64,000 nucleotides of DNA from Anthoceros angustus (taxonomy: Eukaryota > Plantae > Anthocerotophyta): assembly GCA_010909165.1 (NCBI GenBank), contig MU008168.1:310001-374000 (forward strand). The letters run 5' to 3'. Numbering within the stretch: the first letter of the stretch is position 1; the number at the start of each line of letters is the position of its first letter. The notes beneath the pieces were generated by a model. That model did no database searches. It was not told the DNA's origin and saw only the letters and a list, made by a program, of their open reading frames with translations. Positions 12,839 through 44,600 of the stretch are shown here, in pieces. A program made the translations under genes and the position numbers.

Positions 12839-13420
12839 TCGAACTATATTATATACTCTACAACTGCAAATGACAAGTTGTATATATTATGCAATTTTTG
12901 GGCCTCCTAAGTACGGGAAAGAGGTCTCTTAGATGCTCTTTGATCTGTCTCGTGTCTTCTCGAACTTGTAAGCCATGTGTTTCGAGTTATTCTCTGCGTT
13001 TTTTGCCTTATGAAGTTTGTTATGCATGAATTGTAGTGATGACCGTCTGTCAGCATGTGCAGATATTCGGTTCAGTGAGGAGGCGTTGGAAGACGGAAAC
13101 TTGAAATGACGAGATGGTACGCAACTATGCATGGTCTGTAACGTGAAAATTGAGTTCGTCAGTCGAGTTTAAAGAAGTGTGATAAAGTATAATTAAATAG
13201 GAGAAACTTCATTCGATTCCTGCCCGATTGTTGGGAGATTTGTAGTGTCATTGGTTGAGTTATGGCCAGTCATGGCCAGTCTTGTACTTGTACCACATCG
13301 ATTCGCCGATACTCTTCATAGGGATCTGCTTTTCTCGCTCAAATTCTAGAAGAGAATTTCTTACACGGCATGCGCCGTTTGGAGCGCGACATAATCTCGG
13401 CATTCACAATTTCACATTGC

Positions 13421-13515
13421 GTTAGGCCTAAATATCGGTTCGCCAAGGTACGGCCTGGCGAACCGACATGCCATGCCATGAGCATGGCCTTCCTCTCCCT
13501 CTCTCTCTCTTATCC
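13421..13515 (+). repeat. Left TIR of the MULE
   Basis: Reverse complement of 44499-44600 with few mismatches over ~80 bp, extending to ~95 bp. Confidence 0.9.
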
Positions 13516-13542
13516 GTGCCAACCCGCGAGCTACGGTTCCGT

Positions 13543-13599
13543 TGCCCGATTGTCGTGGCACCCCGCGCCATGCCCGATTGTCGTGGCACCCCGCGCCAT
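13543..13599 (+). repeat. 28-bp subterminal tandem repeat x2
   Basis: TGCCCGATTGTCGTGGCACCCCGCGCCA occurs twice, with a degenerate copy near 13515. Confidence 0.8.
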
Positions 13600-13779
13600 A
13601 CCGCCGCCTTCGTTTGTTTGATTGAGAACGAGAGCGGAGAGAGCGCTCTGCTCAAAGGAGGGCACACGGTAAGAGTTGAAAGACCGAAGGCTGGGGAGGA
13701 TGCACGTATATTGATCGTGCTCCAGCGATGGATGAGGTTGCAGCGCATTGTCCTTTGCGATTCGAGGCACGGTGGAGGG

Positions 13780-16700
13780 AAATTTTCTTTCAATGACTTG
13801 GAATGGCAGCAATCCTCATACAAGCATCCATCTTGTCCTAGCCAAGACAAACAACGACAGGTAGCTTACATCCCTTGGACCAGAGTGCAGGATTTCATAG
13901 AGGGCATGAACTCATTGCCACATGCTCCTACAAATTATTACAAGGCATCTCGTAGAGGGCCGGCCAGCAATACTTCAGCAGTAAGTTGTCTGAAGCTAGA
14001 TGCAGCCATTGTCACAACACGGTATGTATGGACCCTAAGGATTCAATCCGTTTACTTTCTGCTTGTTGGTATCATTGAAAGATTTCATCTTCAGTGGTTT
14101 GCTTGCAGTTATTGGTGTGGATATGGGCCACAGGACTTGCGGAATGTTCCCATGCCTCCACCACATACATGGAGGGTGAGAAGAAGCGTAGACGGTCTTG
14201 GATTGCTAATGGTGAAAGCATCAAACACGCAACAGCTTCGTTTGCCATTACGCGATTCTGAAGATGGCGATGGTGCTCAAGTATCATTATACGAAACTAT
14301 GCACGTGGATGTTTCCAGAAGAGTGTGTCATGGCCCAGAGTACGTAGGCATGCCAAGAGATGTCAGGGCTCCTCACTTGAGTCTTGTGAAGGCATGGGTG
14401 AAACATGGTTTATCGTAATGTTTCTATGTCGAGATTCTTAGGCGACACGGAGGCGGTGAGCGAAATGTTGTGGGCTTTCAACAAGCTTGGAGCATGAGTC
14501 ACAGTATGTCCAGGTTAGAGATGATTTCTTGACACGTGCAGACATTGACAATCTTGCCGTCGACTTGCAAGGTACAGTGTGGAAACATCATCAGGATGAC
14601 AATATTAGTGTGGGTATATGGATGCGGCTCAATGCTGCATTTGTGTTTCACAAGTCCACTGCTGATCAGTCGTTTTGTTTGGGGATTCAGACCCGTTCAT
14701 GCTTCAGACCTGTTTGACACATGGTAAGAATAATGTGCTCGGGATTGATTCCACGTTTAGTGTAAACTAGTACAAGTACCAGCTCTTCACAATTATGGCT
14801 TTCGACCTTCACATGAATGGTATTCCGGTAGCATGGGTTTTTGCAAAGGACGGTACAAGTGACACCATAGCCAGGTGGTTGACATCTTTTCATGAGGTTC
14901 TGTTAAGTATGAATGCAACTTGGTTGCCCTACGCAATATTGGTTGATGATTGTCCAGCTGAGATTGTTGCAATTCAAAAGGTTTACAATTACAGTGTTCC
15001 TGTTCTACTTTGCCTCTGGCATGTGCGTCGTGCTTGGCTCCGTAATCTTATTAAGAAAGTCCAAAGCAGGTAGACAAGGAAGCCATATGGCGAATTGCTC
15101 AAGTAACATTATACTAAACTATGCACGTGGATGTTTCGGAAGAGTGTCATGGCCCAGAGTACGTAGGCATGCCAAGAGATGTCGTGGCTCCTCACTTGAG
15201 TGCCGACAAGAAGGCATGGGTGAAACATATCGTGTAATGTTTATGTCGAGATTCTTAGACGACACCAGAGCGTGCGAAATGTTGTGGGCTTTCAACAAGC
15301 TTGGAGCATGAGTCACGGTATGTGGTTAGAGATGATTTCTTGACACGCAGACATTGACAATCTTGCCGACTTGCAAGGTACAAGGTGGAAACATCATCGA
15401 TGACAATATTAGTGTGGTATATGGATGCGGCTCAATCGCATTTGTGTTTCACAAGTCCACGATCGATCGTTTGTTTGGGGATTCGCACCGCTCATGCTTC
15501 GCACTGCTTGACACATGGTAAGAATAATGTGCTCGGATTGATTCCACGTTTGGTGTAAACCAGTACAAGTACCAGCTCTTCACAATTATGGCTTTCGACC
15601 TTCACATGAATGGTATTCCAGTAGCATGGGTTTTGGCAAAGGACGGTACAAGTGACACCATAGCCGTGTGGTTGACATCTTTTCATGAGGTTCTCATAAG
15701 GATGCAACTTGGTTGCCTCGCAATATTGGTTGATGATTGTGCAGAGATTGTTGCAATTCAAAAGGTTTACAATTACAGTGTTCCTGTTCTACTTTGCCTC
15801 TGGCATGTGCGTCGTGCTTGGCTCCGTAATCTTATTAAGAAAGTCCAAAACAGGGTAGACAAGGAAGCCATATAGCAGGAATTAGGTGAACTGATGTACA
15901 TCAAGGGCTCCAGCACATCAATTCGAGATACAATTCGAGAGAGTGAGCAGTTGCTATTTTCCTTCTATGCCAAGTAGGAGAAACGGCAACCCGCGTTCGT
16001 GGGATATTTCAGAACAACCTGGGGTGCACAACTAGGTTAGTCCATATCTCCAGCCTTGTATTCTCCCTTTTCAAGCTTGTGCACATACACATCTTCGCAA
16101 GGCCTGTTTTGATTGCAGGCATGTTCATAAAAAAATGCCCGCATGCTTGCAGGGGCAATCGTGCTCTGCTATAGAGGCATGGCATCGGTTTTTAAGGAGA
16201 AACTTAGTCTTACGAGGGCATCTCTTGCTGGCAGACAAGTAGACTGGCTGTTACATCAATTGTGCTTCGTAATTGCGTCCCATTATTGGTATGTGAACCA
16301 TTGCAAAGGAGGGTATGTGGTTAACACAGCCGAGGAGAAACTGGTGCACACTGCAATAGATGGGGCAACTCTGATTGAGAATGATAATGTTACTTTGCCT
16401 TCCCCACCTTGTACCACAGCTTTATGCAGGAGTTCAACAGATGCCCATGTGACATATACAATTGAGAATGCAGATTCCATGTGGGCTATATGTGAGTGTG
16501 CTCAAGGGAGGAAAGGCTTTATTTGTAAACACATCGTGAAAGTGCAGGATATGCTTGGAGTGCTCTCATACACACTCCGGATGAAGCGTCGATGTCTGAC
16601 AGAAAGATGGTGCAGTAATTCGAGAGAGTGAGCGGTTGCTATTTTCCTTCTATGCCAAGTGGGAGAAAGCGGCAACCCGCGTCAGGCTATTTCAACAACT

Positions 16701-17686
16701 GGGTGCACAACTAGGTTAGTCCATATCTCCAGCCTCGTATTCTCCCTTTTCAAGCTTGTGCACATACACATCTTCACAAGGCCTGTTTTGATTGCAGGCA
16801 TGTTCATAAAAAATGCCCGCATGCTTCCGCATGCAGGGCAATACTGTGCCTCTGCTATAGAGGCATGGCATCGGTTTTTTAAGGAGAAACTTAGTCTTAC
16901 GAGGGCATCTCTTGCTGGCAGACAAGTAGACTGGCTGTTACATCAATTGTGCTTCGTAATTGCGTCCCATTATTGGTATGTGAACCATTGCAAAGAAGGA
17001 GGGTATGTGGTTAACACAGCCGAGGAGGTGCACCTGCTTGCAATAGATGGGGCAACTCGATTGAGAATGATAATGTTACTTTGCCTTCCCACCTTGTACC
17101 ACTTTATGGAGTTCAGCAGATGCCCATGTGACATATACAATTGAGAATCTGATTCCATGTGGGCTACATGTGAGTGTGCTCAAGGGAGGAAAGGCTTTAT
17201 TTGTAAACACATCGTGAAAGTGCAGATATGCTTGGAGTGCTCTCATACACTCCGGATGAAGCGTCGATGACAGATAGTGCAGTAATTCGAGAGCTGTGAC
17301 TCTTGCTTTATGTGATAATAGAGAACAGGTGATGGAAAGCGTTCCGTGCAACCTGCAACCCGCTGTGGAGGGTGTTTTATGTAATGAAAGCGGAACACAA
17401 GATCAGATTCGCTTCCTGGAACAAGATTGCAATGCTATTGTGAATTTGATGCACAAGAATAAGGAAGTCATGGGGGATGCAGCACTTTTGGTGAAACGTA
17501 CACTCATGGATGTCCAGCGTTTGATTGCATATGAGCAGGAAATGCCTGCAGCACGGCAGCCTCTTCAAGCATTTACCTGGTGACGAGGGAGACAACAACA
17601 TCGTCAGGACTAAGCCATTCTTCTCACCACCGAAGAAAAAGAAGAAGAGGGTGACTTGGAAGTTATCAGCAGACAAAGAAAACTAG
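13780..17686 (+). pseudogene. MULE DDE transposase with SWIM zinc finger (At4g13970/At1g60560-like family); frameshifted and duplicated in this assembly, start uncertain
   Basis: Motifs FSFNDLEW, AYIPWTRVQDFIEG, YWCGYGPQD, HVD..CHGP, RDDFLT, FCLGIQT, IDSTF, GIPVAW, LVDD, CLWHVRRAW, SAIEAWH and SWIM CECxxGxxGFICKH. Confidence 0.85.
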
Positions 17687-17830
17687 CGTAAGTGTAGGTG
17701 CGATGTAGGTGCCAGTAATGTCTCCCTTTAGATGTTTTGACCAATGCTGCAATTAATCAAAAACTCAGTCTTGGTGATCGTCCTCTCCGCTCGTCTTGGT
17801 GATCCTCCTCTGCGCTTGCCTCAGTGCGTC

Positions 17831-20800
17831 TGTGGCGCGACTTTCGCTGATGGCCAGCCGGGCGCGCACAATCCCGTGTCGTTGTAGGAAGAAGTCCGTT
17901 CCCAAGGGAATGATAGGCTCCGTTTACCGCGTTTCAGGTGATTCCTACCGCACTTAGCGCTCGTTCAGTCTCAACGCACACATACTCCTAACTACTCACA
18001 ACGTTCACCGTACAGGCCCGGTATGGCCAAACGTTTAGGGACCCGTTCGCGTCCGTATCGTTCACATACATCCCTCACGCATCGATCCTTTCCTCTCCTC
18101 TCACGCTACACTCTTGATCTTAGAAAAAGCGGGTTCTGTGATCCGGACCTCCTCCGCCTCCTCCGCTGCTCCGGCCTCTCCGTCCGGGCTCTACACGCCC
18201 GAGTTCCTCCGGCTCACGTTCAGTCAGTTCGGTCGGACTTGGTCCGGACCTCGGTCCGGACAAAGTCGGACTCACGCCCACCCTTCCTGCACACACCACA
18301 GCGTTAAGTCCGTCACGGACCTTGATCAATCTCCCGGAGGCGCCTTTCGGTGACTCGGGACTCACGTTAGCAAGAAGACTCACAAAGGTCTCGCAAGAAC
18401 GCGCATCAACACCAAGAGAAAGATGCTTTACTAGGCTCGGCCCTCTTATCTGCGCCCAAGGTGGCGTCTTTATTACACCCCTATTACGGGCGTGCTCGGT
18501 ATACCTAATCGCCGCCTACCATCCTATTTCCCCTATCTCCTTCGCCGTGGTGGGAAGGTCACAGGCCCGCCTCGGAATGGGTGGTCAATCCCGCGGTTGT
18601 GGTGCACCCAATCGGATGATCCGTGAGGCGGGCCCCTCCTCTCCGGAATCACAGCCGGGTTGGGCTCGTGATCGACAACCGCCGTTACCACGGCGTCATC
18701 CTCCTCGGCCTCCCCAGGTCCTTGGCGGTGGGGCCACCACTATCGGCTCCCTAGCGTAAGTCGAAGGGGCTCCTCCTTCTTGCCGCCGGTCCTCGAGGTC
18801 TGTCTCGACTCCGAACTTGAGTCGGACTTATTACGGGTCCGGACTTGAGTCCGGCTAGGTCCGACCTTGTCTGGGTCCGGACCTCGGTCCGGACCTCGGT
18901 CCGGACTTGAGTCGGACTTATTAGTCCGGACTTGAGTCGGACTTATTCTGGTCCGGACTTGAGTCCGGCCTCCTCGGTCCTTCGCCGGTGGGGCCACCAC
19001 CATTCGCTCCCCTAGCGTAAGTCGGGGCTCCTCCTCCGCCGCCTCCTCGGTCCTCGAGGTCTGTCTCGACTCGAACTCGAGTCCGCTTATTTCGGTCCGC
19101 CGGCTAGGTCCGACCTTGTCTGGGGTCCGGACCTCGTGGTCCGGACTTATTACGGGTCCGGACTGTGGTCCGGACTTATTACGGGTCCGGACTTGTGGTC
19201 CGGACAAAGTCCGACTCGGTCCGGACTGTGGTCCGGCCTCCGGGTCCGGACAAAGTCCGGACTCACGCCCACCGGGTTTCCTCCTCACGGGACTCCTCCG
19301 TGGCTCTCCTCAAGTCCTCCAGTTCCCGATCGCCGTGGCTCTCCCTCGAAGTCCTCCATCTCCTCCTTCCTCGATCCGAGCGAGGGACTCCGCCTTGGCC
19401 TCCTCCTTCCATGGTGAGGTGCGGGTGCTTACCTCGATCGCATCCGCCTCCCTCGTTCTCCTCCTCCGGTTGCTCCTCTCCGCGCTCCGTCATCTCAAGC
19501 AGGGCCACTAGGGTCCTGTCTTTGTCCCGTGGCCTTCATCTCCTTGAGCCTTCCGGTCCGTCGTTTCCTCCTCACGGACTCCTCCGCCTTCGGGAGCTCG
19601 GCGTGGTAATAGGCAAAGTCAGATCGACTTGTTGAATTGCCTCTTCCACGTGTGCGGGCACCGATACTCCCTCGCCATAAGTGTTGGGGAGGCGTCTTTG
19701 CCCGGCTTGTTGGGCCACCTCTCTGCCCGGTTGTGGTGGGCAGGTATCACGCGAGGCTACAAGGCGGCCTCGGTCACCTCCTGCGGTGCAGTTGCTCCAC
19801 TGCTCCGGCTCCGTCGTTTCCTCTCCATTGCCCGGCTTGTTGGGCCACCTCTCCTGCCCGGTTGTGTGGGTATCAGCGAGGCTACAAGGCGGCCTCGGTC
19901 ACCTCCTGCTCCTTCCGCCTCTTGGCCTCCATCTCCTCCTCCGGCTCCGTCGTTTCCTCTCCATTGCCACTTACCGCCATAGCGCGGCGTTCCCTTCCGC
20001 CTTTCTCGGTGGACGGCTTCTTTTACGCTTCCGGTGCTCGCGCTCCTCCGTTCATTACGGCCTTTAGCTCCGACTCCCTCTCAGTGGTCGGATACCTCCG
20101 TCCGACTCGGACTTCCTCCGGCTCATACATGGCACAGCGTCCAACTCCTTGGATAGTCGCGATTTTCCTCCGTCTTGAGGAGCTGGGCTCTCGTGCTCGA
20201 GTCGTGGATTCTCTCGTTGAGAATCACTGCTCCGACGCATCTTGGGTTGTAGCTCCAGTGTCCTTCATCCTCCATCTGCTGCGCCTCTCCTCTACTTCCT
20301 GCGGTGTACTCGGAGATCTCCTATCTCCCGAGTCTTGGCCTCCATCTCCTCCTCCGGTGGCCTCCATCTCGCCGCCTTTGTGCGGCCTTGAGTTAGCCTC
20401 ATGCTGACTCTCCACGGTTCGATCACGTCATGGTGATCCGGTCGCTCTCTTCCCTTCGCCTCCTTCCGCCTTTACAGGCCTCGCCCACTTGGCGCCGCCT
20501 AGCCGGCCGCCTCCGCCAGTCCCGAGCTCTCTGCTTGTGCCGGGCCTCTTCCGCCTCTGCTGCGCTTCCCTTCGCAAGGTCCTCCGCCCGCTTGGCCTCT
20601 GAGCTTGCCCCGGTGACGGTGAAGAACCTTAACCAGTCTGCTTGAACGCCGGGCCTCGCGCTCCGCCACCGGCGTTCCCTTCCTCGATCCGGCGAGGGAC
20701 TCCGCCTTTTCCTTTGCCCCTCGGCCGCCTTCACTTGCTCTTGGGTTCCACCATCCTCCTCGGGTGGCCTCCACTTCACAGGTCTTCTCCTGTACCACGA

Positions 20801-23323
20801 GACCCCAAAGCATTCCGTCCATGGCGGTAGCGGACTTCGCCGTGTTTCTTCCACGGCCGGTGAGGCCCCCACAAAGTCCGTAGTGGGAGCCGGCATTTCT
20901 CGATCCGAGGACCTCCATACCGATCGAGTAAGTCGGTGGGTTCTCGGACCTAATCGGGACCCTCGGTCACAGTGGTGAGGTCCGAGTCTCACCCTCTTGG
21001 CCTCTTGGCCTCTAACTCCTTGGCCCGGCCTCTTCCTCCTTCCGCCTCTTCCGCCTCTTCCTCACCGAAGGTCCTCCGCCCGCTTGGCCTCTGAGCTTGT
21101 TTCACTGTCAGAACCTTGGCCCGGCCCCGAACCGCCTCGGCCCGCCACCCGGCGCTTCCTTCCTCGATCCGAGCGAGGGACTCCGCCTTTTCCTTTGCCT
21201 CGGCCGCCTTCACTTGCTCTTGAGTTCCACCATCCTCCTCCGGTGGCCTCCACTTCGGGTCTTCTCCACTGCACACGAGACCCCAAAGCATTCCGTCCAT
21301 GACGGTAGTGACTCGCCGTGTTTCTTCCACGGCCGCCGCTGGTGAGGCCCCCACAAAGTCCGTAGTGGGAGCCGGCATTTCTCGGTCCGCCAAGGACCTC
21401 CATACCGCAGCCCCGAGTAAGTCCGACTGGGTTCTCGGACCTAATCAGACCTCAGTCCCGAGTGGTGAGGTCCGAGTCTCACCCTCTTGGCCCTCTTGGC
21501 CTCTAACTCCTTTGTGCCCTCTTTCTCACAGGGCTCGGAGGAGGTGAGGGGTCGGGAGCAAGCTCTTTTGCCCCTTCACAGCCGGGGGACCGGCTCGAGG
21601 TGGGGCTGCGCGGTGACCTCCTGCTCCTTGGGCCACGTCCCCTGCCCTCCTTACGCCTCTTGACCTCTTGCCACTCCGTGGCGGGGTAAGTCCGGCACCT
21701 TGAGGTCTTTGCGTTGGTAAGCGGCACCGTCTTCCGCCTCTTGCTCCCGTTGAGTTCGTCGGGGCTCGGCGGCCGTCGTGGTTGTTGGGCCACCTCTCCG
21801 CCTTTTCCTTTGCCCCTCGGCCGCCTCCTCCTCCGGTGGCCTCCATCTGCTGCCCTCCTTCCGCCTTTCTCACAGGGCTCGGAGGGCACCAAAAGGAGGA
21901 AGGGGAATCGCCTCCCAAACTTCCACAGGTGGTGAGGGGTTCGCTCCGGCGTATGGAGTCAGGAATCCTCGATCGTCCTCCTCCGAGTCGCTTGGTCTTG
22001 AAGGGCGACCCCCACCTCAGGCGCCCTTGCACGCTCTACTTGGCGGGGCCTCCGGCTCCTTAGGCGCCCGCTCAAGCTCTCCCTCCTTGAGCTCGAAATG
22101 TCCCCATACATGAATCGGGTATGGGGTCACCGATGGCGAGGCTTCTCGCTCCTTAGCTTGCGTGCCTGGGAACCGGCGAAGATAATCCTTCCCGGTCGCT
22201 CTCTTCCCATGGGCGCATGCGAGAATACCAGCAGGTTATCACCAAGGTGATCCACCTTGGTGAGTTCAATGGACAATGATCCGGGCTACCGCCCTTACTC
22301 GATCCGGCGGATCGGATATCAACCATCCGTTGGTTGTCCGCTGCGTTCGAGCCTCGGCGTGCCATGGCCTATCTTCCCTTCGCCTTAAGGGGCTCGCACC
22401 ACGCCCCTTCTTCCTCCTCCGGGCGGTTGTAGGCCATCCTCGGGACCTCAAGGTCCATCGCCTCGGGTCCTCCGGAGGTTCTTGGATCGGACCTCCTTGT
22501 TGATCGCCGCCGGCATCTTCGGGCAAACTCCGGACTAGAGCGTTGAAGGTCAGACCATTTGGAACACGTCCGGATGCCATTCCCCACCAATTCCTGCTTC
22601 CTCCGGCCCGGGCCCGAAGTCCGGATAGCGCGGGTCACAATGTTGCGCTCCACGAGGGTCCATGGCTCCCAGACTTCGTCGGCTTTTGGGTGCCATTGCT
22701 TCCTCCTCTTGTTCTTTGTAGGCTGGCCGAGTCCGGCACGATGTTCCTCGCCGCGTTGTTGCTCCAACCTTGGTGAGCGCTCTGGGGCGCCCAAAAGATA
22801 GCGCCAGAGAGCCGGATTGCGGGCGCAAGGCTGTGAGGATTATGCGGGCTGTGAGCCACCTCCCTCCTTGGCGCTTGTGGAAGTAATCAGCGGAAGGCGC
22901 CTCTTCGTTGTCCGTAGCGCGAGTGCATGGCTTACTCGACCCTCGCTTCCGCTTACTGCGGCCTTACGCGCCGCGCGCGGGCGTGAATACTGCCTGCGGC
23001 AAGGTTACGGTCTGACCTCGCATGCCCGACCTCCACTCGGGGCCGTCCACGTGGCGCCGCCTGCATCCTCACGCCTCCGCTCCTAGGTTACTTTCCTGGC
23101 GTACTTATCCTGTTTTGACACAGGTGGGTTCGGACTTATCCGTTACTCGGCGTAGTCCGAGCTTGCCATAGTGGTACCGGGGTCCGTTGTTCACTCCAGT
23201 CGGAGTATACTCGAGCCTCGTCCGGCGCTACCCCAATTTATTCCTCCTTTTCGCCTTATTTATCCTTCAATCCTAAAAAGCGAAACCCTACTTATTTCTT
23301 AACTCCCGAGTGCATAGCCCACA
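17831..23323 (-). repeat. 3' LTR (~5.5 kb as assembled)
   Basis: Its left end matches the PBS-adjacent end at 31861 and 33198 (TGTGGCG..). Its right end matches 42240-42307 (CGAAACCCTACTTATTTCTTAACTC..TGCATAGCCC) and abuts the PPT. Confidence 0.8.
18830..19262. repeat. Minisatellite array of the GTCCGGAC(TT) palindrome within the LTR
   Basis: Many GTCCGGACTT/GTCGGACTT units. Equivalent arrays occur at ~34115-34405, 34685-34855, 35645-35818, 37235-37400 and 38803-38968. Confidence 0.85.
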
Positions 23324-23338
23324 TACTCCCTTCTCATC
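23324..23338 (-). other. Polypurine tract
   Basis: Minus-strand GATGAGAAGGGAGTA lies between the integrase stop (23357) and the LTR start TG. Confidence 0.7.
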
Positions 23339-23356
23339 ATTGGCGTCTCGCCAACA

Positions 23357-31790: not shown

Positions 31791-31842
31791 ATTCACTTAC
31801 CTTCTCTTCCTAAGGGCGCACTGCGGCACCAGACCGATTTCA

Positions 31843-31857
31843 TTCCCGGCAGCGCCA
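31843..31857 (-). other. Primer-binding site (tRNA-Asp type); second copy at 33179-33194
   Basis: Minus-strand TGGCGCTGCCGGGAA and TGGCGCCGTTGGGGAA lie 3 nt after the LTR CA. Their consensus matches TGGCGCCGTTGCCGGGGA. Confidence 0.75.
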
Positions 31858-31860
31858 AAA

Positions 31861-34800
31861 TGTGGCGACTTTTCTTGATGGCCGGGCGCGCACAATCCGT
31901 GTCGTTGTAGGAAGAAGTCCGTTCCCAAGGGAATGATAGGCCCGTTTACGCGTTTGGTGATTCTTACCGTCCTTAGCGCTCGTTCGGCCTCAACACACAC
32001 ACACTCTCCTTCTCTGGCGTTCACCGTCTGGGTGGTGGCCAAGCGTTTGAGACCCGTTCGCGTCCGTATCGTTCACATACATCCTCACGCATCATCCTTT
32101 CCTCTCTCTCACGCTACACTCTTGATCTTAGAAAAGGCCGGGTTCTATCGGACCTCCTCGTCGTTCCGGCCTCTCCGTCCGGGCTCTACACGCCCTCCGG
32201 AGTTCCTCCGGCTCACGTTCGGTCGGACTTGGTCCGGACCTCGGGTCCGGACGAGCACGGTCACCTCACCCTTCCCGCACACACCACAGCGTTAAGTCCG
32301 TCACGGGACCTTGATCAATCTCCCGGGCCGTGCACCTTTCGGTGACTCGGGACTCACGTTAGCAAGAAGACTCACAAAGGTGCAAGAGCGGCATCAACAC
32401 CAAGAAAGATGCTTTACTAGGCGGCCTCGGCCCTCTTATCTGCGCCCAAGGCGTCTTTATTACACCCCTATTACGGTGATAGCTCGGTATACCCTAATCG
32501 GCCGCCTACCATCCTATTTCCCCCTATCTCCCGCCTTGTGGGAAGGTCACAGGCCGCCTCGGAATGGGTGGTCAATCCCGTCAGGTTGTGGTGCACCCAA
32601 TCGGATGATCCGTGAGGCGGGCCCTCTCTCCCGGAATCACAGTCGGGTTGGGCTCTGGCGGCGGTCGACAACCGCGTTACCACGGCGTCATCCTCCCCAG
32701 CCTCCACAGGTCCTTGGCCGGTGGGGCCACCCATTCTCCTGGTCGGTACTTTCTCCGATACCATTGAGCGGTCCTCGGAGAACCCCTTGGAAAAGCTGAG
32801 TCCCCCCTCCGTTGAAGTTGGCTTTGGACATGAAGTCCTCCACAAAGGTCTCGCATCCGCTCCTTCTTCCCTCCGAATATGGAGTACGCTTGTTTGGTCG
32901 AGGTAGGGGCCATGGCCGCCATCGTGGGTTAGGCGTCTGTCCTACCTTCTTCCGTTGGCGTCCCTTGTACCCGTACTCGTCTTGGTCCGACACCGACCAC
33001 GTTCCTCCTCCGATCGACGGTGCTCTCGTTGGGTTTGACGTCTCTCTCCCCGGCTCGGAGAACGCGAGGTGACCACGTCCGATCCTCCCGACGGTTCACT
33101 CTTGACCGCCGCTCGACCGCCACGCATTCACTTACCTTCTCTTCCTAAGGACGCACTTTGCACCACGCATCGATTTCATTCCCCAACGGCGCCAAAATGT
33201 GGCGGACTTTCGATGGCCACCGCACAATCCGTGTCGTTGTAGGAAGAAGTCCGTTCCCAAGGGAATGATAGGCTGCCACGCGTTGTGATTCTACCGCCCT
33301 TAGCGCCTGCTCACCTCAACACACACATACTCCTAACTACTCACAACGTTCACCGTGACAGCCGGTATGGCCAAACGCTTAACCCGTTCAGATCGCTCAC
33401 ATCCCTCACGATCCGCCTTTCCTCTCTCTCCTCTCACGCTACACTCTTGATCTTAGAAAAGAGTTACGCCGGACCTCCTCCTCCCGCTGGGGCCTCTCCG
33501 TCCGGCTCTACACGCCCTCCGGAGTTCCTCCGGCTCACGTTCGGTCGGACTTGGTCGGACTTGGTCCGGACGAGCACGGTCACCTCACCCTTCCCCACAC
33601 CACAACGCTAAGTCACGGGACCTTGATCAATCTCCCGAGTTCCTCCTCCGCCGCTCGGTGACTCAGACTCACGTTAGCAAGAAGACTCACAAAGGTCGCA
33701 AGAACGCGCATCAACACCAAGAGAAAGATGCTTTACTAGAGGCCCTCTTATATCGCGCCCAAGGTGGCGTCTTTATTACACCCCTATTACGGTGATAGCC
33801 ACTCGGTATACCCTAATCGGCCGCCTACCATCCTATTTCCCCTATCTCCTTCGCCGGTGGAAGGTCCTGGCCCCGCCTCGGAATGGGTGGTCCAATCCCC
33901 GTCACAGGCGCACCCAATCGGATGATCCGTGAGGGCCCCTCCTCTCCCGGAATCGCCGTTGCTACCGGTCGACAACCGCGCCACGACGTCATCCTCCCCG
34001 CCCCTCCTCGGGTCCTTCACGGTGGGGCCACTATCGCTCCCCTAGCGTAAGTCGAAGGGGCTCCTCCTTCTTGCCGCATCCGGTCCTCGAGGTCTGTCTC
34101 GACTCACGAACTTGAGTCCGGACTTATTCAGTCCGGACTTGGTCCGACCTTGTCTCAGGGTCCGGACCTCGGTCGGACGCGGCTCGGACTTGGTCCGGAC
34201 TTATTAGGGTCCGGACTTGAGGTCCGGACTTATTCTGGGTCGGACTTGGTCGGACTTATTGAGTCCGGACTTGTCCGGCCTCCTCGGGTCCGGACCTCGG
34301 GGTCGGACTTATTCTGGTCGGACTTGGTCGGACTTGAGTCCGGACTTGTCGGACTTATTCAGTCCGGACTTGTCGGCCTCCCTCGGGTCCGGACAAAGTC
34401 CGGACTCACGCCCACCGGGTTTCCTCCCTCACGGGACTCCTCCGTGGCTCTCCTCAAGTCCTCCAGCTGTTCCCGATCGCCCGGTGACTCCTTCGTTGGC
34501 CCCTCCTTCCATGGTGAGGTGCGGGGTGCTTACCTCGATCGCATCCGCGCTCCTCGTCCTCCCTGGCCTCCACAGGTCCTTGGCCGGTGGGGCCACCGGC
34601 TATCTGCTCCCCTAAGCGTAAGTCGAAGGGGCTCCTCCTTCTTGCCCGATCCGGTCCTCGAGGTCTGTCTCGACTCACGAACTTGAGTCCGGCTTATTCT
34701 GGTCCGGACTTGGTCCGACCTTGTCTGGGGTCGGACCTCGGTCGGACTTATTCTGGGGTCCGGACTTGGTCCGGACTTATTCTGAGTCCGGACTTGGTCC

Positions 34801-37800
34801 GGACTTATTCGGTCGGACTTGGTCGGCCTCCCTCTGGTCCGGACAAAGTCCGGACTCACCGGGTTTCCTCCCTCACGGGACTCCTCGTGGCTCTCCCTCG
34901 AAGTCCTTCTGTTCCCGATCGCCCGGTGACTCGCCGTTGGCCCCTCCTTCCATGGTGAGGTGCGGGGTGCTTACCTCGATCGCATCCGCGCTCCTCGTCG
35001 TTCCGCGGGCCTCTCGTCCTCTACCGCCTCCGGAGTTCCTCCGGCTCACGTTCAGTCCCGTTCGGTCGGACGCGGCTCGGGCGAGCAAATCACGATCACC
35101 CTTCCTGCACACACACACACAGCGTTAAGTCCGTCACGGGACCTTGATCAATCTCCCGGGTCGTGCACCTTTCGGTGACTCGGGACTCACGTTAGCAAGA
35201 AGACTCACAAAGGTGCAGCGGCATCAACACCAAGAAAGATGCTTTACTAGGCTCGGCCCTCTTATCTGCGCCCAAGGCGTCTTTATTACACCCCTATTAC
35301 GGTGATAGCCGGCTCGGTATACCTAATCGGCCTACCATCCTATCCCCCTATCTCCTTCCATTGTGGTGGGAAGGTCACAGGCCGCCTCGGAATGGGTGGT
35401 CAATCCCGTCAGGTTGTGGTGCGCAATCGGATGATCCGTGAGGCGGGGCCCCTCCTCTCCGGAATCACAGCCGGGTTGGGCTGGCGGCGGTCGACAGCCG
35501 CCGTTACCACGGCGTCATCCTCCCTGGCCTCCACAGGTCCTTGGCCGGTGGGGCCACCGGCTATCTGCTCCCCTAAGCGTAAGTCGAAGGGGCTCCTCCT
35601 TCTTGCCCGATCCGGTCCTCGAGGTCTGTCTCGACTCACGAACTTGAGTCCGGCTTATTCTGGTCCGGACTTGGTCCGGCCTTGTCTGGGGTCGGACCTC
35701 GGTCGGACTTATTCTGGGGTCCGGACTTGGTCCGGACTTATTCTGAGTCCGGACTTGGTCCGGACTTATTCGGTCGGACTTGGTCGGCCTCCCTCTGGTC
35801 CGGACAAAGTCCGGACTCACCGGGTTTCCTCCCTCACGGGACTCCTCGTGGCTCTCCCTCGAAGTCCTTCTGTTCCCGATCGTGACTCGCCGTTGGCCCC
35901 TCCTTCCATGGTGAGGTGCGGGGTGCTTACCTCGATCGCATCCGCTCCCTCGTTCTGCTCCTCCGCTCCTCTCCGCTCCGTCATCTCAAGCAGGCCACTA
36001 GGGTCCTGTCTTTGTCCCGTGGCCTTCATCTCCTTGAGCCTTCCGGTCCGTCCGTTTGCGTGACGTCGAGGCTTCTCGCCGAGGCTCGGTGTGGTAATAG
36101 GCAAAGTCAGATCGACTTGTTGAATTGCCTCTTCCACGTGTGCGGGCACCGATACTCCCTCCGCCATAAGTGTTAGGTGGGCGTCTTGCCGGCTTGTTGG
36201 GCCACCTCTCCTGCCCGGTTGTGGTGGGCAGGGTATCGCGAGGCTACAAGGCGCCTCGGTCACCTCCTGCATGCCTGTTGCTCCACACTCCGGCTCTCGT
36301 TTCCTCTCCATTGCCACTTACCGCCATAGCGCGGCGTTCCCTTCCGCCTTTCTCGGTGGACCGGCGGCTTCTTTTACCTTCCGGTGCTCGCGCTCCTCCG
36401 TTCATTACGGCCTTTAGCTCATGACTCCCTCTCCAGTGGTCGATACCTCCGTCCAGGCTCGGACTTCCTCCGGCTCATACATGGCACAGCAGCGTCCAAC
36501 TCCTTGGATAGTCGCCGATTTTCCTCCGTCTTGAAGGGGCTCTATTTCGTGCTCGAGTCGTGGATTCTCTCGTTGAGAATCACTGCTTTGCTCAAGCGCA
36601 TCTTGGGTTGTAGCTCCAGTGTCCTTCTGTCCTCCATCTGCCGCCTCTCCTCTACTTCCTGCGGTGTGCTGATCCTCCTATCTCCCGAGGCCGGCCTCCA
36701 TCTCCTCCTTGGCCCTTGCACTCCATAGCCTGTGCGGCCGGCCACCTCGTGACTCTCTCCACGGTTCGATCACGTCATGGTGATCCGGTCGCTCTTCTTG
36801 ACTTCCGACTCCTTCGCCGCCTTTACAGGCCGCCCACTTGGCCCTGCTGGCCGGGCCGCCTCCGGTCCGAGCTCTCTGCTTGTGCCGGGCCTCTTCCGCC
36901 TCTGCTGCGCTTCCCCCGCTGCAAGGTCCTCCGCCCGCGCTTGGGCCTCCCAGGCTTGCTTTGCGTGAAGAACCTTGGTCTGCTGAACCCGCCTCGGAAT
37001 GGGTGGTCAATCCCCGTCGGCGGTTGTGGTCGGATGATCCGGCGGGGCCCCTCCTCTCTCCGGAATCACAGCCGGGTTGGGCGGCGGTGATCGACAGCCG
37101 TTACCACGGCGTCATCCTCCCCGGCCTCCACAGGTCCCGCGGTGGGGCCACCACTATCTGCTCCCCTAAGCGTAAGTCGAAGGGGCTCCTCCCCTTCTTG
37201 CCGGTCCTCGAGGTCTGTCTCGACTCACGAACTTGAGTCGGACTTGAGTCCGGCCCGGCTAGGTCCGACCTTGTCTGGGTCCGGACCTCGGTCGGACTTA
37301 TTGAGTCCGGACTTGAGTCGGACTTATTGTCGGACTTGAGTCGGACTTATTCTGAGTCGGACTTGATCCGGCCTCCCCTAGGTCCGGACAAAGTCCGGAC
37401 TCACGCCCAGGTTTCCTCCCTCACGGGACTCCTCAGTGGCTCTCCCTCGAAGTCCTCCAGCTGTTCCCGATCGGTGACTCCGTTGGCCCCTCCTTCCATG
37501 GTGAGGTGCGGGGTGCTTACCTCGATCGCATCCGCTCCCTCGTTACGCTCGGTTGCTCCTCTCCGCGCTCCGTCATCTCAAGCAGGGCCACTAGGGTCCT
37601 GTCTTTGTCCGTGGCCTTCATCTCCTTGAGCCTTCCGGTCCGTCCGTTTGCGCGGCGTCGAGGCTTCTCGCCCGGGCTCGGCGTGGTAATAGGCAAAGTC
37701 AGATCGACTTGAATTGCCTCTTCCACGTGTGCGGGCACCGATACTCCCTCGCCATAAGTGTTAGGCGTCTTTGCCGGCTTGTTGGGCCACCTCTCGGTTG

Positions 37801-40800
37801 TGGTGGGGCCGTATCACGCGAGGCTACAAGGCGGCCTCGGTCACCTCCTGCATTGCATGTTGCTCCACTGCTCCGGCTCTCGTTTCCTCTCCATTGCCCG
37901 ACTTACCGCCATAGCGCGGCGTTCCCTTCCGCCTTTCTCGGTGGACCGGCGGCTTCTTTTACCTTCCGTGCTCGCTCCTCCGTTCATTACGGCCTTTAGC
38001 TCATGACTCCCTCTCCAGTGATCGGTACCTCCGTCCAGGCTCGGACTTCCTCCGGCTCATACATGGCACAGCGTCCAACTCCTTGGATAGTCGCCGATTT
38101 TCCTCCGTCTTGAGACAGAGGCACTATTTCGTGCTCGAGTCGTGGATTCTCGTTGAGAATCACTGCTGCTCAAGCGCATCTTGGGTTGTAGCTCCAGCGT
38201 GTCCTTCTGTCCTCCATCTGCTGCCGCCTCTACTGCTGTACTCGGAGATCTCTATCTCCCGTCTTGGCCTCCATCTCCTCTCTCCGGCACTGCTCCATAG
38301 CCTTTGTGCGGCCTTGAGCCTCGGTCACTGTGACTCTCTCCACGGTTCCGATCACGTCATGGTGATCCGGTCGCTCTTTTGCCGACTTGCTCGCCGCCTT
38401 TACAGGCCGCCCACTTGGCCTCCATCTGCCGCCGCCTCCGCCAGTCGAGCTCTCTGCTTGTGCCGGGCCTCTTCCGCCTCTGCGCTTCCCCTCTTCGCTG
38501 CAAGGTCCTCCGCGCTTGGGCCTCCCAGCTTGCTTGTGCCTGGTGAAGAACCTTAAGTCTGCTGAACCGCCGGGCCTCGCGCTCCGCCACCGGCGTTTCC
38601 CTTCCTCGATCCGGCGAGGGACTCCGCCTTTCCTTTGCCCCGGCCGCCTTCACTTGCTCTTGGGTTCCACCATCCTCCTCGGGTGGCCTCCACTTCCACA
38701 GGTCCCGCGGTGGGGCCACCACTATCTGCTCCCCTAAGCGTAAGTCGAAGGGGCTCCTCCCCTTCTTGCCGGTCCTCGAGGTCTGTCTCGACTCACGAAC
38801 TTGAGTCGGACTTGAGTCCGGCCCGGCTAGGTCCGACCTTGTCTGGGTCCGGACCTCGGTCGGACTTATTGAGTCCGGACTTGAGTCGGACTTATTGTCG
38901 GACTTGAGTCGGACTTATTCTGAGTCGGACTTGATCCGGCCTCCCCTAGGTCCGGACAAAGTCCGGACTCACGCCCAGGTTTCCTCCCTCACGGGACTCC
39001 TCAGTGGCTCTCCCTCGAAGTCCTCCAGCTGTTCCCGATCGGTGACTCCGTTGGCCCCTCCTTCCATGGTGAGGTGCGGGGTGCTTACCTCGATCGCATC
39101 CGCTCCCTCGTTACGCTCGGTTGCTCCTCTCCGCGCTCCGTCATCTCAAGCAGGGCCACTAGGGTCCTGTCTTTGTCCGTGGCCTTCATCTCCTTGAGCC
39201 TTCCGGTCCGTCCGTTTGCGCGGCGTCGAGGCTTCTCGCCCGGGCTCGGCGTGGTAATAGGCAAAGTCAGATCGACTTGAATTGCCTCTTCCACGTGTGC
39301 GGGCACCGATACTCCCTCGCCATAAGTGTTAGGCGTCTTTGCCGGCTTGTTGGGCCACCTCTCGGTTGTGGTGGGGCCGTATCACGCGAGGCTACAAGGC
39401 GGCCTCGGTCACCTCCTGCATTGCATGTTGCTCCACTGCTCCGGCTCTCGTTTCCTCTCCATTGCCCGACTTACCGCCATAGCGCGGCGTTCCCTTCCGC
39501 CTTTCTCGGTGGACCGGCGGCTTCTTTTACCTTCCGTGCTCGCTCCTCCGTTCATTACGGCCTTTAGCTCATGACTCCCTCTCCAGTGATCGGTACCTCC
39601 GTCCAGGCTCGGACTTCCTCCGGCTCATACATGGCACAGCGTCCAACTCCTTGGATAGTCGCCGATTTTCCTCCGTCTTGAGACAGAGGCACTATTTCGT
39701 GCTCGAGTCGTGGATTCTCGTTGAGAATCACTGCTGCTCAAGCGCATCTTGGGTTGTAGCTCCAGCGTGTCCTTCTGTCCTCCATCTGCTGCCGCCTCTA
39801 CTGCTGTACTCGGAGATCTCTATCTCCCGTCTTGGCCTCCATCTCCTCTCTCCGGCACTGCTCCATAGCCTTTGTGCGGCCTTGAGCCTCGGTCACTGTG
39901 ACTCTCTCCACGGTTCCGATCACGTCATGGTGATCCGGTCGCTCTTTTGCCGACTTGCTCGCCGCCTTTACAGGCCGCCCACTTGGCCCTCTGGCGGGGC
40001 CGCCTCCGCCAGTCGAGCTCTCTGCTTGTGCCGGGCCTCTTCCGCCTCTGCGCTTCCCCTCTTCGCTGCAAGGTCCTCCGCGCTTGGGCCTCCCAGCTTG
40101 CTTGTGCCTGGTGAAGAACCTTAAGTCTGCTGAACCGCCGGGCCTCGCGCTCCGCCACCGGCGTTTCCCTTCCTCGATCCGGCGAGGGACTCCGCCTTTC
40201 CTTTGCCGGCCGCCTTCACTTGCTCTTGGGTTCCACCATCCTCCTCGGGTGGCCTCCACTTCACAGGTCTTCTCCATTTGTACCACGAGACCCCAAAGCA
40301 TTCCGTCCAGTAGCAGGACTTCGCCGTGTTTCTTCCACGGCCGTAGTGAGGCCCCACAAAGTCCGTAGTGGGGCCGGCATTTCTCGATCCGCCAGGACCT
40401 CCATACCGATCCGGAGTAAGTCGGTGGGTTCTCGGACCTAATCGGGACCCTCGGTCACGAGTGGTGAGGTCCGAGTCTCACCCTCTTGGCCCTCTTGGCC
40501 TCTAACTCCTTTGTGCCCTCTTTCTCACAGGGCTCGGAGGAGGTGAGGGGTCAGGAGCAAGCTCTTTTGCCCCTTCACATCGGGGCAGGGGCCGGCTCGA
40601 GGTGGGGCTGCTGCGTGACCTCCGCCTCCTTGGGCCACGTCCCTTTACGCCCTCCTTCGCCTCTTGACCTCTTGCCACTCCGTGGGCGGGGTAAGTGCGG
40701 CACCTTGAGGTCTTTGCGTTGGTAAGCGGCACCGTCTTCCGCCTCTTGGCTCCCGTTGAGTTCGTCGGGGCTCGGCGGCCGTCGTGGTTGTTGGCTGGCA

Positions 40801-42307
40801 TAGGTGCGGGCCAGCTCCTCGACTCCCTCTGTCTTGGTGCTCGGAGGGCACCAAAAGGAGGAAGGGGAATCGCCTCCCAAACTTCCACAGGTGGTGAGGG
40901 GTTCGCTCAGGCGTATGGAGTCAGGAATCCTCGATCGTCCTCCTCCGAGTCGCTTGGTCTTGAAGGGCGACCCCCACCTCAGGCGCCCTTGCACGCTCTA
41001 CTTGGCGGGGCCTCCGGCCCTTGGGCGCCCGTTCAAGCTCTCCCTCCTTCAGGAGCTCGAAATGTCCCCATACATGAATCAGGTATGGGGTCAGCCCCGA
41101 TGGCGAGGCTTCTCGCTCCTTAGCTTGCGTGCCTCCTGACTGAACGGGCGAAGATAATCCTTCCCCAGTCCGCTCTCTTCCCCCGCTGGAGCGCATGCAA
41201 GAATACCAGCAGTTATCACCAAGGTGATCCACCTTGGTGGCGAGTTCAATGGACAATGATCCGGCTACCGCCCTTACTCGATCCGGCGGATCGGATATCA
41301 ACCATCCGTTGGTTGTCCGTGCGTTCGAGCCTCGGCTCGCGGCTGGTGGCCTATCTTCCCCCGCCTTAAGGGGCTCGCACCACGCCCCTTCTTCCTCCTT
41401 GGGCGGTTGTAGGCCATCCTCGGGACCTCAAGGTCCATCGCCTCGGGTCCTCCGGAGGTTCTTGGATCGGACCTCCTTGTTGATCGCCAACATCTTCCGC
41501 AAACTCCGGACTAGTAACCATCAAGGTCGACCATTTGGAACACGTCCAGATGCCACTCCCACCAATTCCCTGCTTCCTCCGGCCGGGGCCGAAGTCCGGA
41601 TAGCGCGGGTCACAATGTTGCGCTCCACGGTCCATGGCTCCCAGACCGGCTTTTGGGTGCCATTGCTTCTCCTCCTCTTGTTGTGCATGGCTGGCGAGTC
41701 GGCGCGATGTTCCTCCTTCGCGCGTTCGTTGCTCCAACCTTGGCCGGTGAGCGGCGCCCAAAAGATAGCGCCAGAGAGCCGGATTGCGGGCGCAAGGGAG
41801 AGGATTATGCGGAGGCTGCGCGCGATGACCTCCTCCTTGGCCGCGCTTGTGGAAGTAATGGCGGAAGGCGCCTCTTCGTTGTCCGTGCGCGAGTGCATGG
41901 CTTACTCGACCCTCGCTTCCGCTTACTGCGGCCTTACGCCGCGCGCGGCGCGGGCGTGAATACTGCCTGCGGCCTGCAGCAGGTTACGGTCTGACCCTGC
42001 ATGCCCGACCTCCACTCGGGGCCGTCCACGTGGCGCCGCCTCGTCATCCTCACGCCTCGCTCCTAGGTTACTTTCCTGGCGTACTTATCCTGTTTTGACA
42101 CAGGTGGGTTCCGGACTTATCCGTTACTCGGCGTAGTCCGGAGCTTGCCATAGTGCGGGGTCCGTTGTTCACTCCGAGTCGGAGTATACTCGAGCCTCGT
42201 CCGGCGCTACCCCAATTTATTCCTCCTTTTCCGCCTTATTTATCCTTCAATCCTAAAAAGCGAAACCCTACTTATTTCTTAACTCTCGAAGTGCATAGCC
42301 CCATACA
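31861..42307 (-). repeat. 5' LTR region, expanded by multiple partial duplications
   Basis: Same blocks as 17831-23323 but reiterated, with restarts near 33198, 34560, 35030, 36990 and 38695. Confidence 0.75.
37127..40262 (+). repeat. Near-identical 1568-bp tandem duplication
   Basis: Identical ORFs offset by 1568 bp (37327/38895, 37709/39277). Confidence 0.9.
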
Positions 42308-44498
42308 TTGCGCATGTGCGCGCTTAAGCCAGTTCGACTTAAATTGTATCGTGCCGAGTATCGCGCGGTATTGAGGACGCGGGCGAATTAGTTCCCTAAG
42401 CCTCGGTGGCCCGGTCGCGGGTTGGTCAGCCACATCGCCATTCAGTCGCTCCATTTCTTGCTGCTGTCAAGCCACTCGCTGGTAAGCCCCTAAGTGCATA
42501 TCACGCCGTGGAAGCGCCCTCAATAATGCTTCGTCCAGAAGGGTTTCATTCGGTAAGCGCAAAGGCTGTACTGTATCTTCAACGTCCGACCTTGAAAACC
42601 ATTTCCACGGCTTTTGGAGCGCCATGACAATGTTTGTTCCCCATGATAACCGCAATCTCATGCTGGTCTTCCAAGAAGGCCTCCCACCACAAATGTTCAT
42701 CTGCGGCAATATATGCACGCAAGCCAGAAAGCCCTTCTTTAAGATGGGCCACACCCTCTGTTGCCTTTAAACCTGGAAGTGTTCCCTTTTTGTCCCTAGA
42801 TCGAGTGCTAGGAGAGGTGATGTTGTGATGTCGTTAGACGGGACGAACTTCAAGAACTCCAAGCCTCCTTCAGGCTCCCATAGCGGCGATGTTGAATATT
42901 GCTTGCTTCGAATAACCGTGATTAGACCTTGCTCCGCCTTATCCTCCCGTGTTATCTTGAACTGGTGTTGGAACGAAAGGTTATTCAGTTTCCGGACTGC
43001 AGCTGTGTACGATAGCCGACCATCTCCTCTTCTGATGGGCAAGACATATAACCGGAAGTCCGGCACCTCGGTGAGAATTTTCACTGCCGGAGTTGGTGTG
43101 TATGCTTTTACGAGGTCGGATAGTCGTGCAATGTGCGCTTGTGTTTCGAGCACCGTGAAAACATCTGGTCAATCTGGTCGTGTGTGTGCCCCACTATAGC
43201 AGGAATCCCACCTTCACCTTCTGAAATGTCCCCATATATCTATCTACTAACATATTCAGATATGCAAAAAGAAGTTGATTTTTGTTCTCTCGACAAGTAT
43301 TGTCCAACTGCAAGTACAAGACTTTAGGCAATATCCCTTCATAATTGTGCAGAACATCTTGAATGATGCATATCGTCAGGTTTGCATCGTTCCGAAGGTT
43401 TGCATAGTGCAAATATGCTGTCGCTTTGTATGTATAGTTATGAACCATGCACCACATGTACGACTATGCACTCCTCACTTAAATTCTTTGGCCACCGTAA
43501 AAAACGTGGGATCTCCATTTTCTTTTGGTCCATCCCATCAATAGCGAGTAACATGTACTTGTGGGGCTCAACGTAGCTTTTCGTCCGATGTTTGGCTATT
43601 TTGGCACGCTCTGCTGATAACCGCTCGCGATGCGCCTCAAGCGCACGTTGATATTTCTCTGCACCAAACAATGTACATTTCATTAGCATCTTGCTGCTGC
43701 CCTTGCTGCTATAATCAACCACCCAAAGTGGAGGAGGAGGCGGCCGGCGGCACCTCCTCACTCCTGTTGTTGCAGTCCCTCTGTCCACTATGCATGCAGA
43801 GGGATACAGTGGAGAGGGGCCCGCCGCCTCCTCAATCCGATTTGGCCACTTAAAGTCCGCTTGTCCACTATGTGCATGCAAGAGGAACTGTGTGGGGAGG
43901 AGTCGTCGGCCTACCGGCGCCTCCTCCCCACTAAACCATGCTGTGTACGCGCCTGCACACTAACCCTAAATGTCAACATAGCCATAGTTGGGGAGATGGC
44001 GCTGACCGGCCGGCGCCTCCTCCCCAACTATGGCTATCATGCCTTCAGTGCCACATAGCAAACGCCGAAATAGAGAAGGGAATGGACTGGGAAGGGATGC
44101 CATACCTTGATCAACCTTTGAAAAAGTGTTCCGGATGGTTGCCTTTAACCCCGCGCATATCGCACACGTAGAAAATCTGTTGGACTTAGGTATCTTAACA
44201 CTGCTGAAGTGCACCTTCCAAAGCCTTAGAAACCAGGCATATGTAATAGCCCTTGTTTGTGACCGCTCACATTGTCGCTTGTACTGGCCCCATAGCTCTG
44301 GCTTAATACGTGTCCAGGAAGATTGTACACTGCGCGTGGGGGCCTCGCCATGGACATGAAAACGTTGTCCATCCAAGCAAGTGCATCATCGGATGATGTT
44401 GACAGCTGTGATGGATTTGGTCTCTGGTTATCCCATGGCGAGCTGCGCTGCACCCTGCTTTTCAACTCTTCATATCGCTTATGACCAATCCAGAAAAC
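42308..44498 (-). pseudogene. Sola/DUF7869-like DDE transposase gene with one intron (43659-44105); 5' end abuts the right TIR and 3' end is interrupted by the Gypsy element
   Basis: FLRLWKVHF..VKIPK..FSTCAIC, HR...AER, AIDGMDQ, LYLQLDNTCRENKN and VGHTHDQIDQMFS. The GT-AG intron restores the frame (KVDQ-E-KYQRAL). Confidence 0.75.
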
Positions 44499-44600
44499 CC
44501 GATACGAGAGAGAGGGGCAGGGGAGAGGAAGGCCATGCTCATGGCATGGCATGTCGGTTCGCCAGGTCGTACCCTGGCGAACCGATATTTAGGCCTAGCC
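44499..44600 (-). repeat. Right TIR of the MULE
   Basis: Inverted match to 13421-13515, followed by the TSD TTCACATTGC. Confidence 0.9.

Follow-up and report, generated by a model that had tools for sequence, protein, structure and literature searches.

The window analysed here, a stretch of 64,000 nucleotides from Anthoceros angustus (contig MU008168.1, positions 310,001 to 374,000 of the forward strand), holds a transposon whose terminal inverted repeats (TIRs) and target-site duplication (TSD) enclose two convergent genes of the transposase type. The plus-strand gene is of the MURA type found in Mutator-like elements (MULEs), the minus-strand gene is an incomplete member of the DUF7869 family, and a long terminal repeat (LTR) retrotransposon separates the two. 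The analysis points to a MULE that probably carries the incomplete, Sola-like transposase gene as cargo, without Sola ends. The main features of the locus, in window coordinates, are listed below together with the means by which each was located.

13411-13420, no strand: left copy of the TSD, TTCACATTGC, read directly and the same as 44601-44610
13421-13510, plus strand: left TIR of the MULE (core arm 13423-13499), from an inverted-repeat search, BLASTN and a 20-mer count
13728-17686, plus strand: MULE (MURA-type) transposase gene with many broken frames, from Pfam, frame reading and motif coordinates
17831-42306, minus strand: Ty3/gypsy-like LTR retrotransposon between the two genes, from LTR alignments, Integrase_H2C2 and the order of its open reading frames (ORFs)
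42596-44334, minus strand: incomplete Sola-like (DUF7869) transposase gene, from Pfam, TBLASTN with relatives and a profile of 43 relatives
44507-44600, minus strand: right TIR of the MULE (core arm 44521-44597), from an inverted-repeat search, BLASTN and a 20-mer count
44601-44610, no strand: right copy of the TSD, read directly

The boundaries of the element are sharply defined. Only one long inverted-repeat pair was identified between 13000 and 45000, with arms of 77 nt at 13423-13499 and 44521-44597 that are 97% identical, and BLASTN self-comparison widens the TIR to about 90 nt at 93% identity (13423-13510 and 44597-44507). Within the window, the terminal 20-mer of the TIR is restricted to the two element ends, with 0 occurrences expected by chance. 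The TSD is exact over 10 bp, and its copies are set off from the repeat arms by GT and GCC, placing the element ends at 13421 and 44600. Outside these 10 bp the two flanks share no further similarity, and the odds of 10 bp agreeing exactly at a fixed offset by chance are roughly one in a million. The Mutator superfamily is characterised by long TIRs and a TSD of about 9-11 bp, and long TIRs, a 10-bp TSD and a MURA-type transposase with a MULE domain are present here. Likewise, MULEs have been described with long TIRs and TSDs of 7-12 bp (PMC10741241). The long TIRs and the 10-bp duplication are the signature of a Mutator-like element. A first-pass annotation of this DNA had proposed a single TIR pair with an exact TSD around two convergent genes, and both the boundaries and the convergent layout (13728 to 17686 on the plus strand, 44334 to 42596 on the minus strand) are borne out. 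Its estimate of about 6.7 kb for the element minus the retrotransposon also agrees with the sequence as assembled, approximately 1.5 kb of which consists of two tandem duplications. It further had each gene starting at or near a TIR; the ORFs opening within the two TIRs mirror each other as a product of the inverted repeat itself. A short hairpin of about 30 nt lies near the tip of each TIR, at 44554-44585 and 13435-13466.

The left arm carries the MULE transposase gene. The MULE domain (PF10551) is found twice above the Pfam cut-off of 27.6, with 34.4 bits at 15528-15872 and 31.1 bits at 14771-15070, and the ZSWIM1-3_RNaseH-like model gives 30.3 bits on the same gene. The SWIM domain (PF04434) reaches 17 bits, under its cut-off of 19.6, and the CxC...CxH pattern is visible in both duplicated copies; the first-pass reading of this gene as a SWIM-MULE transposase is borne out for the MULE domain, with a candidate SWIM finger. 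A candidate ATG lies at 13728, about 220 bp inside the TIR, and the reading frames close at 17583 or 17686 (stops at 17581 or 17684), past a basic stretch. Since two head-to-tail duplications lie within the gene, there are two copies each of the MULE domain, the E region and the candidate SWIM finger. The copies differ by 32 substitutions versus 30 gap events in the first duplication and by 11 substitutions versus 27 gap events in the second. The N-terminal part of the gene (14110-14136 and beyond) shows weak, recognisable similarity to an unannotated MULE-type ORF of the liverwort Riccia sorocarpa. The parts of the gene, all on the plus strand and placed by motif coordinates unless stated otherwise, are as follows.

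14110-14136: N-terminal motif
15537-15554: first catalytic D region
14936-14953 and 15723-15740: second D
16168-16191 and 16854-16877: E region
16491-16532 and 17169-17210: candidate SWIM finger
17627-17653: basic tail
14264-15873 (14264-15088 / 15087-15873): tandem duplication 1, doubling the MULE domain, 90% identical by BLASTN self-comparison
15932-17293 (15932-16626 / 16617-17293): tandem duplication 2, doubling the E region and the candidate SWIM finger, 91% identical by BLASTN self-comparison

The gene of the right arm, which was searched as single frame pieces or exons, belongs to a different family. One frame piece (43197-43457, minus strand) matches the Pfam family DUF7869 at E = 7.7e-21, and the gene matches this family and no other; it is not a mudrB homologue. 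Against 1.84 billion representative proteins, the same piece finds 504 relatives, the best of them at 55-62% identity, and the named ones belong to a liverwort (Riccia sorocarpa), a fern and a sea urchin. The profile of 43 relatives aligns colinearly from 44334 to 42648, covering positions 292-696 of 891, and the conserved part of the gene begins 187 bp inside the right TIR. Three motifs quoted in the first-pass annotation were located at 43542-43525, 43310-43278 and 43191-43156, where they hold invariant or near-invariant residues of the family, and the invariant D, N and K residues are retained. The annotation had also called this an intron-containing gene, and one real GT..AG intron of 447 nt was identified from 44105 to 43659, with profile positions 363 and 368 on its flanks. 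The liverwort gene has a gap at the same point, and this common intron position means that the copy derives from genomic DNA. Besides the intron, the gene changes frame four times within about 400 codons; these four changes leave no room for introns and are therefore frameshifts. The intron also contains palindromes, one of 60 bp (87%) at 43978-44037 and a related one of 40 bp at 43892-43931. The parts of this gene, all on the minus strand, are given below, placed by motif coordinates except for the intron.

44175-44149: CxxC region, before the intron
43659-44105: intron, with donor and acceptor read directly and an in-frame join
43542-43525, 43310-43278 and 43191-43156: DDD core, the three D
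42701-42675 and 42610-42596: W-rich segments after the core

Relatives of this gene share a C-terminal module of about 155 residues, comprising a small beta-rich domain, then a conserved motif and often an acidic tail. The profile of this module matches relatives outside its building set at E = 1e-23 to 1e-48, and it gives no match in either arm of the element on either strand. The module would be expected approximately 100-170 residues past the DUF7869 domain, which is roughly the retrotransposon junction, and the room left before the end of the MULE gene is only about 106 codons. A possible acidic tail had been placed at 17765-17830 by the first-pass annotation. This stretch is a 25-bp unit present twice, listed as

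17768-17816, no strand: 25-bp x2 tandem repeat that gives the "acidic tail" on the minus strand, from Tandem Repeats Finder

and, since a 25-bp unit does not preserve the reading frame, its two acidic motifs are read in different frames. With two frames and no match to the C-terminal profile, the stretch was rejected as the C-terminus of the DUF7869 gene. The gene is incomplete: the DDD core and the conserved intron are kept, and the C-terminal module of about 155 residues is gone.

To characterise the family, an AlphaFold model of one relative (P0017) was built with a 43-sequence alignment, with a mean predicted local distance difference test (pLDDT) score of 75 and values above 90 through the core. 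In the model, which has an RNase H-like fold, one of the three conserved aspartates lies where strand 1 ends, another follows strand 4 and the third sits on the helix after that. Among PDB structures the model is closest to TnsB, IstA, MuA, retroviral integrases, the P-element transposase and RNase H, in all cases weakly (E >= 5e-4). Comparison of copies in Riccia revealed a multi-copy family of DUF7869 elements of about 9.6 kb with 33-bp TIRs, located as follows.

L002:4416-15737 and L006:3157-12769: Riccia DUF7869 elements, from copy comparison
L004:12125, L005:11556 and L001:487: further right ends of these elements, from copy comparison

Both copies with two ends have 4-bp TSDs, namely TTTG and GTAG (the latter with one terminal mismatch). 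A divergent ORF of 231-322 aa, belonging to no known family, lies upstream of the transposase gene in these elements. The inverted repeats first noticed beside the liverwort genes were rejected as element ends, being repeated hairpins. The Sola superfamily has been reported in the moss Physcomitrella and many animals. Descriptions of Sola in bryophytes and many animals give a DDD transposase and 4-bp TSDs (PMC10741241). The DDD transposase, the 4-bp TSDs and the bryophyte and animal occurrence therefore back, by features, the statement in the first-pass annotation that its motifs are of the Sola/DUF7869 type; to these are added the DUF7869 match, the modelled RNase H-like fold and the TIRs of the relatives. 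The data support a putative Sola-like assignment of the gene by features (DDD, and 4-bp TSDs in relatives). A literature search for "DUF7869" found no paper, and one by motif gave nothing relevant.

The insert between the two genes is a Ty3/gypsy-like retrotransposon, as the Gypsy insert of the first-pass annotation had implied. Its LTRs span about 17831-23326 and about 31855-42306, the second being enlarged by tandem duplications, and its internal region spans 23327-31854. Integrase_H2C2 scores 38.7 bits on the insert, and reverse transcriptase-like ORFs lie upstream of integrase-like ORFs on the minus strand, which is the Ty3/gypsy order. No clean 5-bp TSD was found at the retrotransposon ends (GCGTC vs ATTGC). 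Because the insert lacks a clean footprint of its own, the case for contiguous arms is carried by the outer TIRs and TSD. Head-to-tail duplications at 84-92% identity (one at 99.4%) were observed in the transposons at 14264-17293, 20545-21512, 23994-28187 and 31373-40269, and one duplication crosses the LTR/internal boundary of the retrotransposon. Their copies differ mostly by small indels, in the MULE gene and the retrotransposon alike, and the unique host genes are long clean ORFs. The indel-rich differences are likely to reflect unpolished long-read noise or stutter limited to the repeats. Frameshifts in either transposon gene are therefore no proof of decay.

Collectively, these features are probably best explained by a MULE that has an incomplete Sola-like transposase gene, without Sola ends, as its cargo. 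On this explanation, the MULE transposase would have recognised TIRs of about 80-90 bp and made the 10-bp target duplication in a single insertion. The cargo would be an incomplete genomic copy of the transposase gene of a Sola-like (DUF7869, DDD) transposon, lying beside the MULE's own MURA-type gene. It most likely entered either through sequence capture of the kind known from MULEs (transduplication, as in Pack-MULEs) or as a nested element inserted long ago, both ends of which were later lost. The cargo gene, presumably non-functional, would since have moved passively with the MULE, and the Ty3/gypsy retrotransposon would have inserted later into the stretch separating the two genes, close to or at the 3' terminus of the cargo gene. 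Since the TSD is 10 bp here as against 4 bp in the relatives, the MULE enzyme is the likely mover of the element.

Several observations weigh against the cargo explanation. No in-frame stop lies inside the aligned segments of the DUF7869 gene, and all its catalytic motifs are intact. The element is known from a single copy, so that recurrence or selection cannot separate a cargo gene from an accessory gene. The indel-rich repeat noise means that the four frameshifts may be errors, and the retrotransposon lacks a clean TSD, so that a deletion at its insertion could have cut the C-terminal module off a gene that was once whole. The window shows no Sola element that could be the donor. Furthermore, the Riccia sorocarpa locus L001, on chromosome CM100795.1, has a MULE-type gene on the same strand as the DUF7869 gene P0013 and 8.2 kb downstream from it. 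In this unannotated gene (L001:22126-23117), which the end of the locus cuts short, an N-terminal ORF precedes the first catalytic D region; the gene is a distant relative of the MULE gene of the window. Its proximity to P0013 may be due to chance in a transposon-rich region.

The neighbours of DUF7869 genes in nine related loci bear on the same question. The neighbour is a DNA-methylase-like gene in three of the nine, these being mutually homologous, or a small ORF; a convergent MULE gene is found beside the DUF7869 gene in none of them (0/9), and a general DUF7869-MULE partnership was rejected for this reason. Two Riccia sorocarpa loci and a metagenome contig of the European Nucleotide Archive have the DUF7869 gene paired with a DNA-methylase-like gene (PF01555, N6_N4_Mtase), namely

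L001:4915-8109
L008:3406-7139
L007:2982-5414

Judging from these sequences, the methylase-like gene may be a standing accessory gene of Sola-like DUF7869 elements. The window itself holds no remnant of this gene.

An alternative, which we consider unlikely, is a true two-gene MULE family, in which the Sola-type core is a working accessory gene in the mudrB slot, transcribed convergently from the right TIR. The convergent layout, with the conserved gene part starting 187 bp inside that TIR, agrees with it, as do the intact DDD motifs and other family-invariant residues, the conserved intron with good splice sites and the lack of Sola ends; the frameshifts could be assembly noise, and acidic tails end several relatives. 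Against these stand the absence of the conserved C-terminal module, the four frame changes in about 400 codons, a supposed tail that is a 25-bp repeat in two frames, and relatives partnered by a methylase-like gene or a small ORF but never by a MULE gene. In addition, protein searches and metagenome scans gave no second copy. Exon-sized pieces of both genes (43441-43959 minus and 16131-16628 plus) found no match in a set of 5.8 billion proteins, a result whose meaning is limited by the length window of that search; scans of metagenome contigs gave no match to the TIR 20-mer and no relative of the MULE piece. The corresponding evolutionary scenario, in which a MULE lineage in a non-seed land plant recruited the Sola-type DDD core as a standing second gene, the breaks being noise and the C-terminus having been lost in this copy alone when the retrotransposon landed, is also improbable, and nothing positive speaks for it; on this scenario the element would be of the cut-and-paste type and encode two transposase folds unrelated to each other. 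The first-pass annotation had taken this view, proposing a chimeric transposon that captured or co-opted a second transposase in the mudrB position. The part that stands is a single MULE insertion enclosing two convergent, unrelated genes of the transposase type; the loss of the C-terminal module, the four frame breaks and the nine loci without a MULE partner speak against co-option.

It is similarly improbable that the two-gene layout is unreal and arose in assembly, through arms or parts being wrongly joined or duplicated in a poorly polished, repeat-rich stretch. Such an origin would fit the abundance of head-to-tail duplications, 84-92% identical, in both the MULE gene and the retrotransposon, the prevalence of indels among their differences (30 gap events vs 32 substitutions in one, 27 vs 11 in the other), the retrotransposon without a clean TSD and the duplication across its LTR/internal boundary. 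It is opposed by the exact 10-bp duplication beside matching TIRs, evidence that both ends belong to a single insertion site, and by unique host ORFs that are long and intact (a 333-aa L-lactate dehydrogenase and a 521-aa GT61-type protein). Because the outer TSD joins the ends, misassembly is a smaller risk.

Simple nesting of an intact Sola-like transposon in the MULE, recognisable by its own TIRs and 4-bp TSD, is very improbable. Nested transposons are common, and the gene is Sola-like with relatives that have TIRs and 4-bp TSDs; this was also the situation that the first-pass annotation had set against its own proposal. No inverted repeat of >= 10 bp was found with arms in 44335-44520 and in 42308-42600 or 17690-17830, even with 7-nt words. 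As no inverted repeat flanks the DUF7869 gene and only 187 bp separate its conserved start from the MULE TIR, there is no simply nested element here. Moreover, the elements of the relatives are about 9.6 kb long and contain further genes, and the methylase-like gene has left no remnant in the window. Equally remote is the reverse assignment, in which the DUF7869 enzyme, whose core motifs are intact, mobilises the element and carries the MULE gene along: in both complete elements of relatives under study the TSD is 4 bp and the 33-bp TIRs are unrelated, a TSD of 4 bp has also been published for Sola (PMC10741241), and MULEs fit the long TIRs and the 10-bp TSD, so that mobilisation by the DUF7869 enzyme was rejected on the mismatch in TSD length (4 vs 10 bp).

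The element with its probable cargo can be compared with several known systems. MuDR of maize is an autonomous Mutator element with convergent mudrA and mudrB genes, long TIRs and a TSD of the 9-11-bp class. Like MuDR, the window element has long TIRs, a MURA-type gene pointing inward from one end and a second gene pointing inward from the other; unlike MuDR, its second gene is an incomplete DUF7869/Sola-like DDD core and not mudrB, and a single copy is known. It resembles Pack-MULEs, other MULEs with acquired sequence, and the VANDAL and KI-MULE elements, which have accessory genes, in that MULE TIRs and a TSD enclose a foreign, incomplete piece of a genomic gene with the intron kept. Pack-MULEs contain no transposase gene and usually carry pieces of host genes, whereas the window element has a MULE gene of its own (broken as assembled) and its cargo is the transposase gene of another transposon. 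With Sola it shares, through its DUF7869 relatives, a DDD on an RNase H-like fold together with TIRs and 4-bp TSDs (liverwort), but the gene in the window is without Sola TIRs, the 4-bp TSD and the C-terminal module. Chimeras of transposon within transposon are common, and the gypsy insert in the MULE is itself an ordinary nested insertion. The Sola-like part differs from such insertions in lacking its own ends and is therefore a fragment, not a nested element. MULEs with acquired cargo are known; what is new here is that the probable cargo is the transposase gene of another superfamily.

The locus offers a well-delimited case of a MULE with another transposon's transposase gene as cargo. Its main value lies in a warning to annotators, in that domain-based classifiers would assign the element to MULE and Sola alike. 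Were the pairing to recur with the second gene still open, this would be a rare eukaryotic DNA transposon encoding two unrelated transposases, and the question would be whether one transposase is re-used as a regulator or helper, as with mudrB or the VANDAL accessory genes. A side result, perhaps of more general use, links DUF7869 to liverwort Sola-like elements that make 4-bp TSDs and often carry a DNA-methylase-like gene.

Further features were observed in the element and its surroundings. A subterminal tandem repeat is present in the left arm only:

13543-13599, no strand: 28-bp x2 tandem repeat, 100% match, from Tandem Repeats Finder

On the right side of the MULE, the host ORFs include a GT61-type glycosyltransferase of 521 aa (49248-50810) and an intron-less L-lactate dehydrogenase of 333 aa (57793-58791, within a gene region noted at 57298-58791), aligned over 99% of its length; the best match of the latter is an unnamed protein at 79%, and moss proteins match at about 71%. 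The two genes place the window in a land plant. Outside the transposons, 61700-62603 holds a perfect (100%) tandem duplication of 452 bp. On the left side, an ORF of 366 aa (11738-12838), ending about 580 bp upstream of the MULE, encodes a Cys-rich CxC...CxxC region followed by a basic stretch and has no Pfam hit. We take it to be like the C-terminal part of plant B3/VAL-type regulators; if it is of this type, the MULE sits directly downstream of a host gene.

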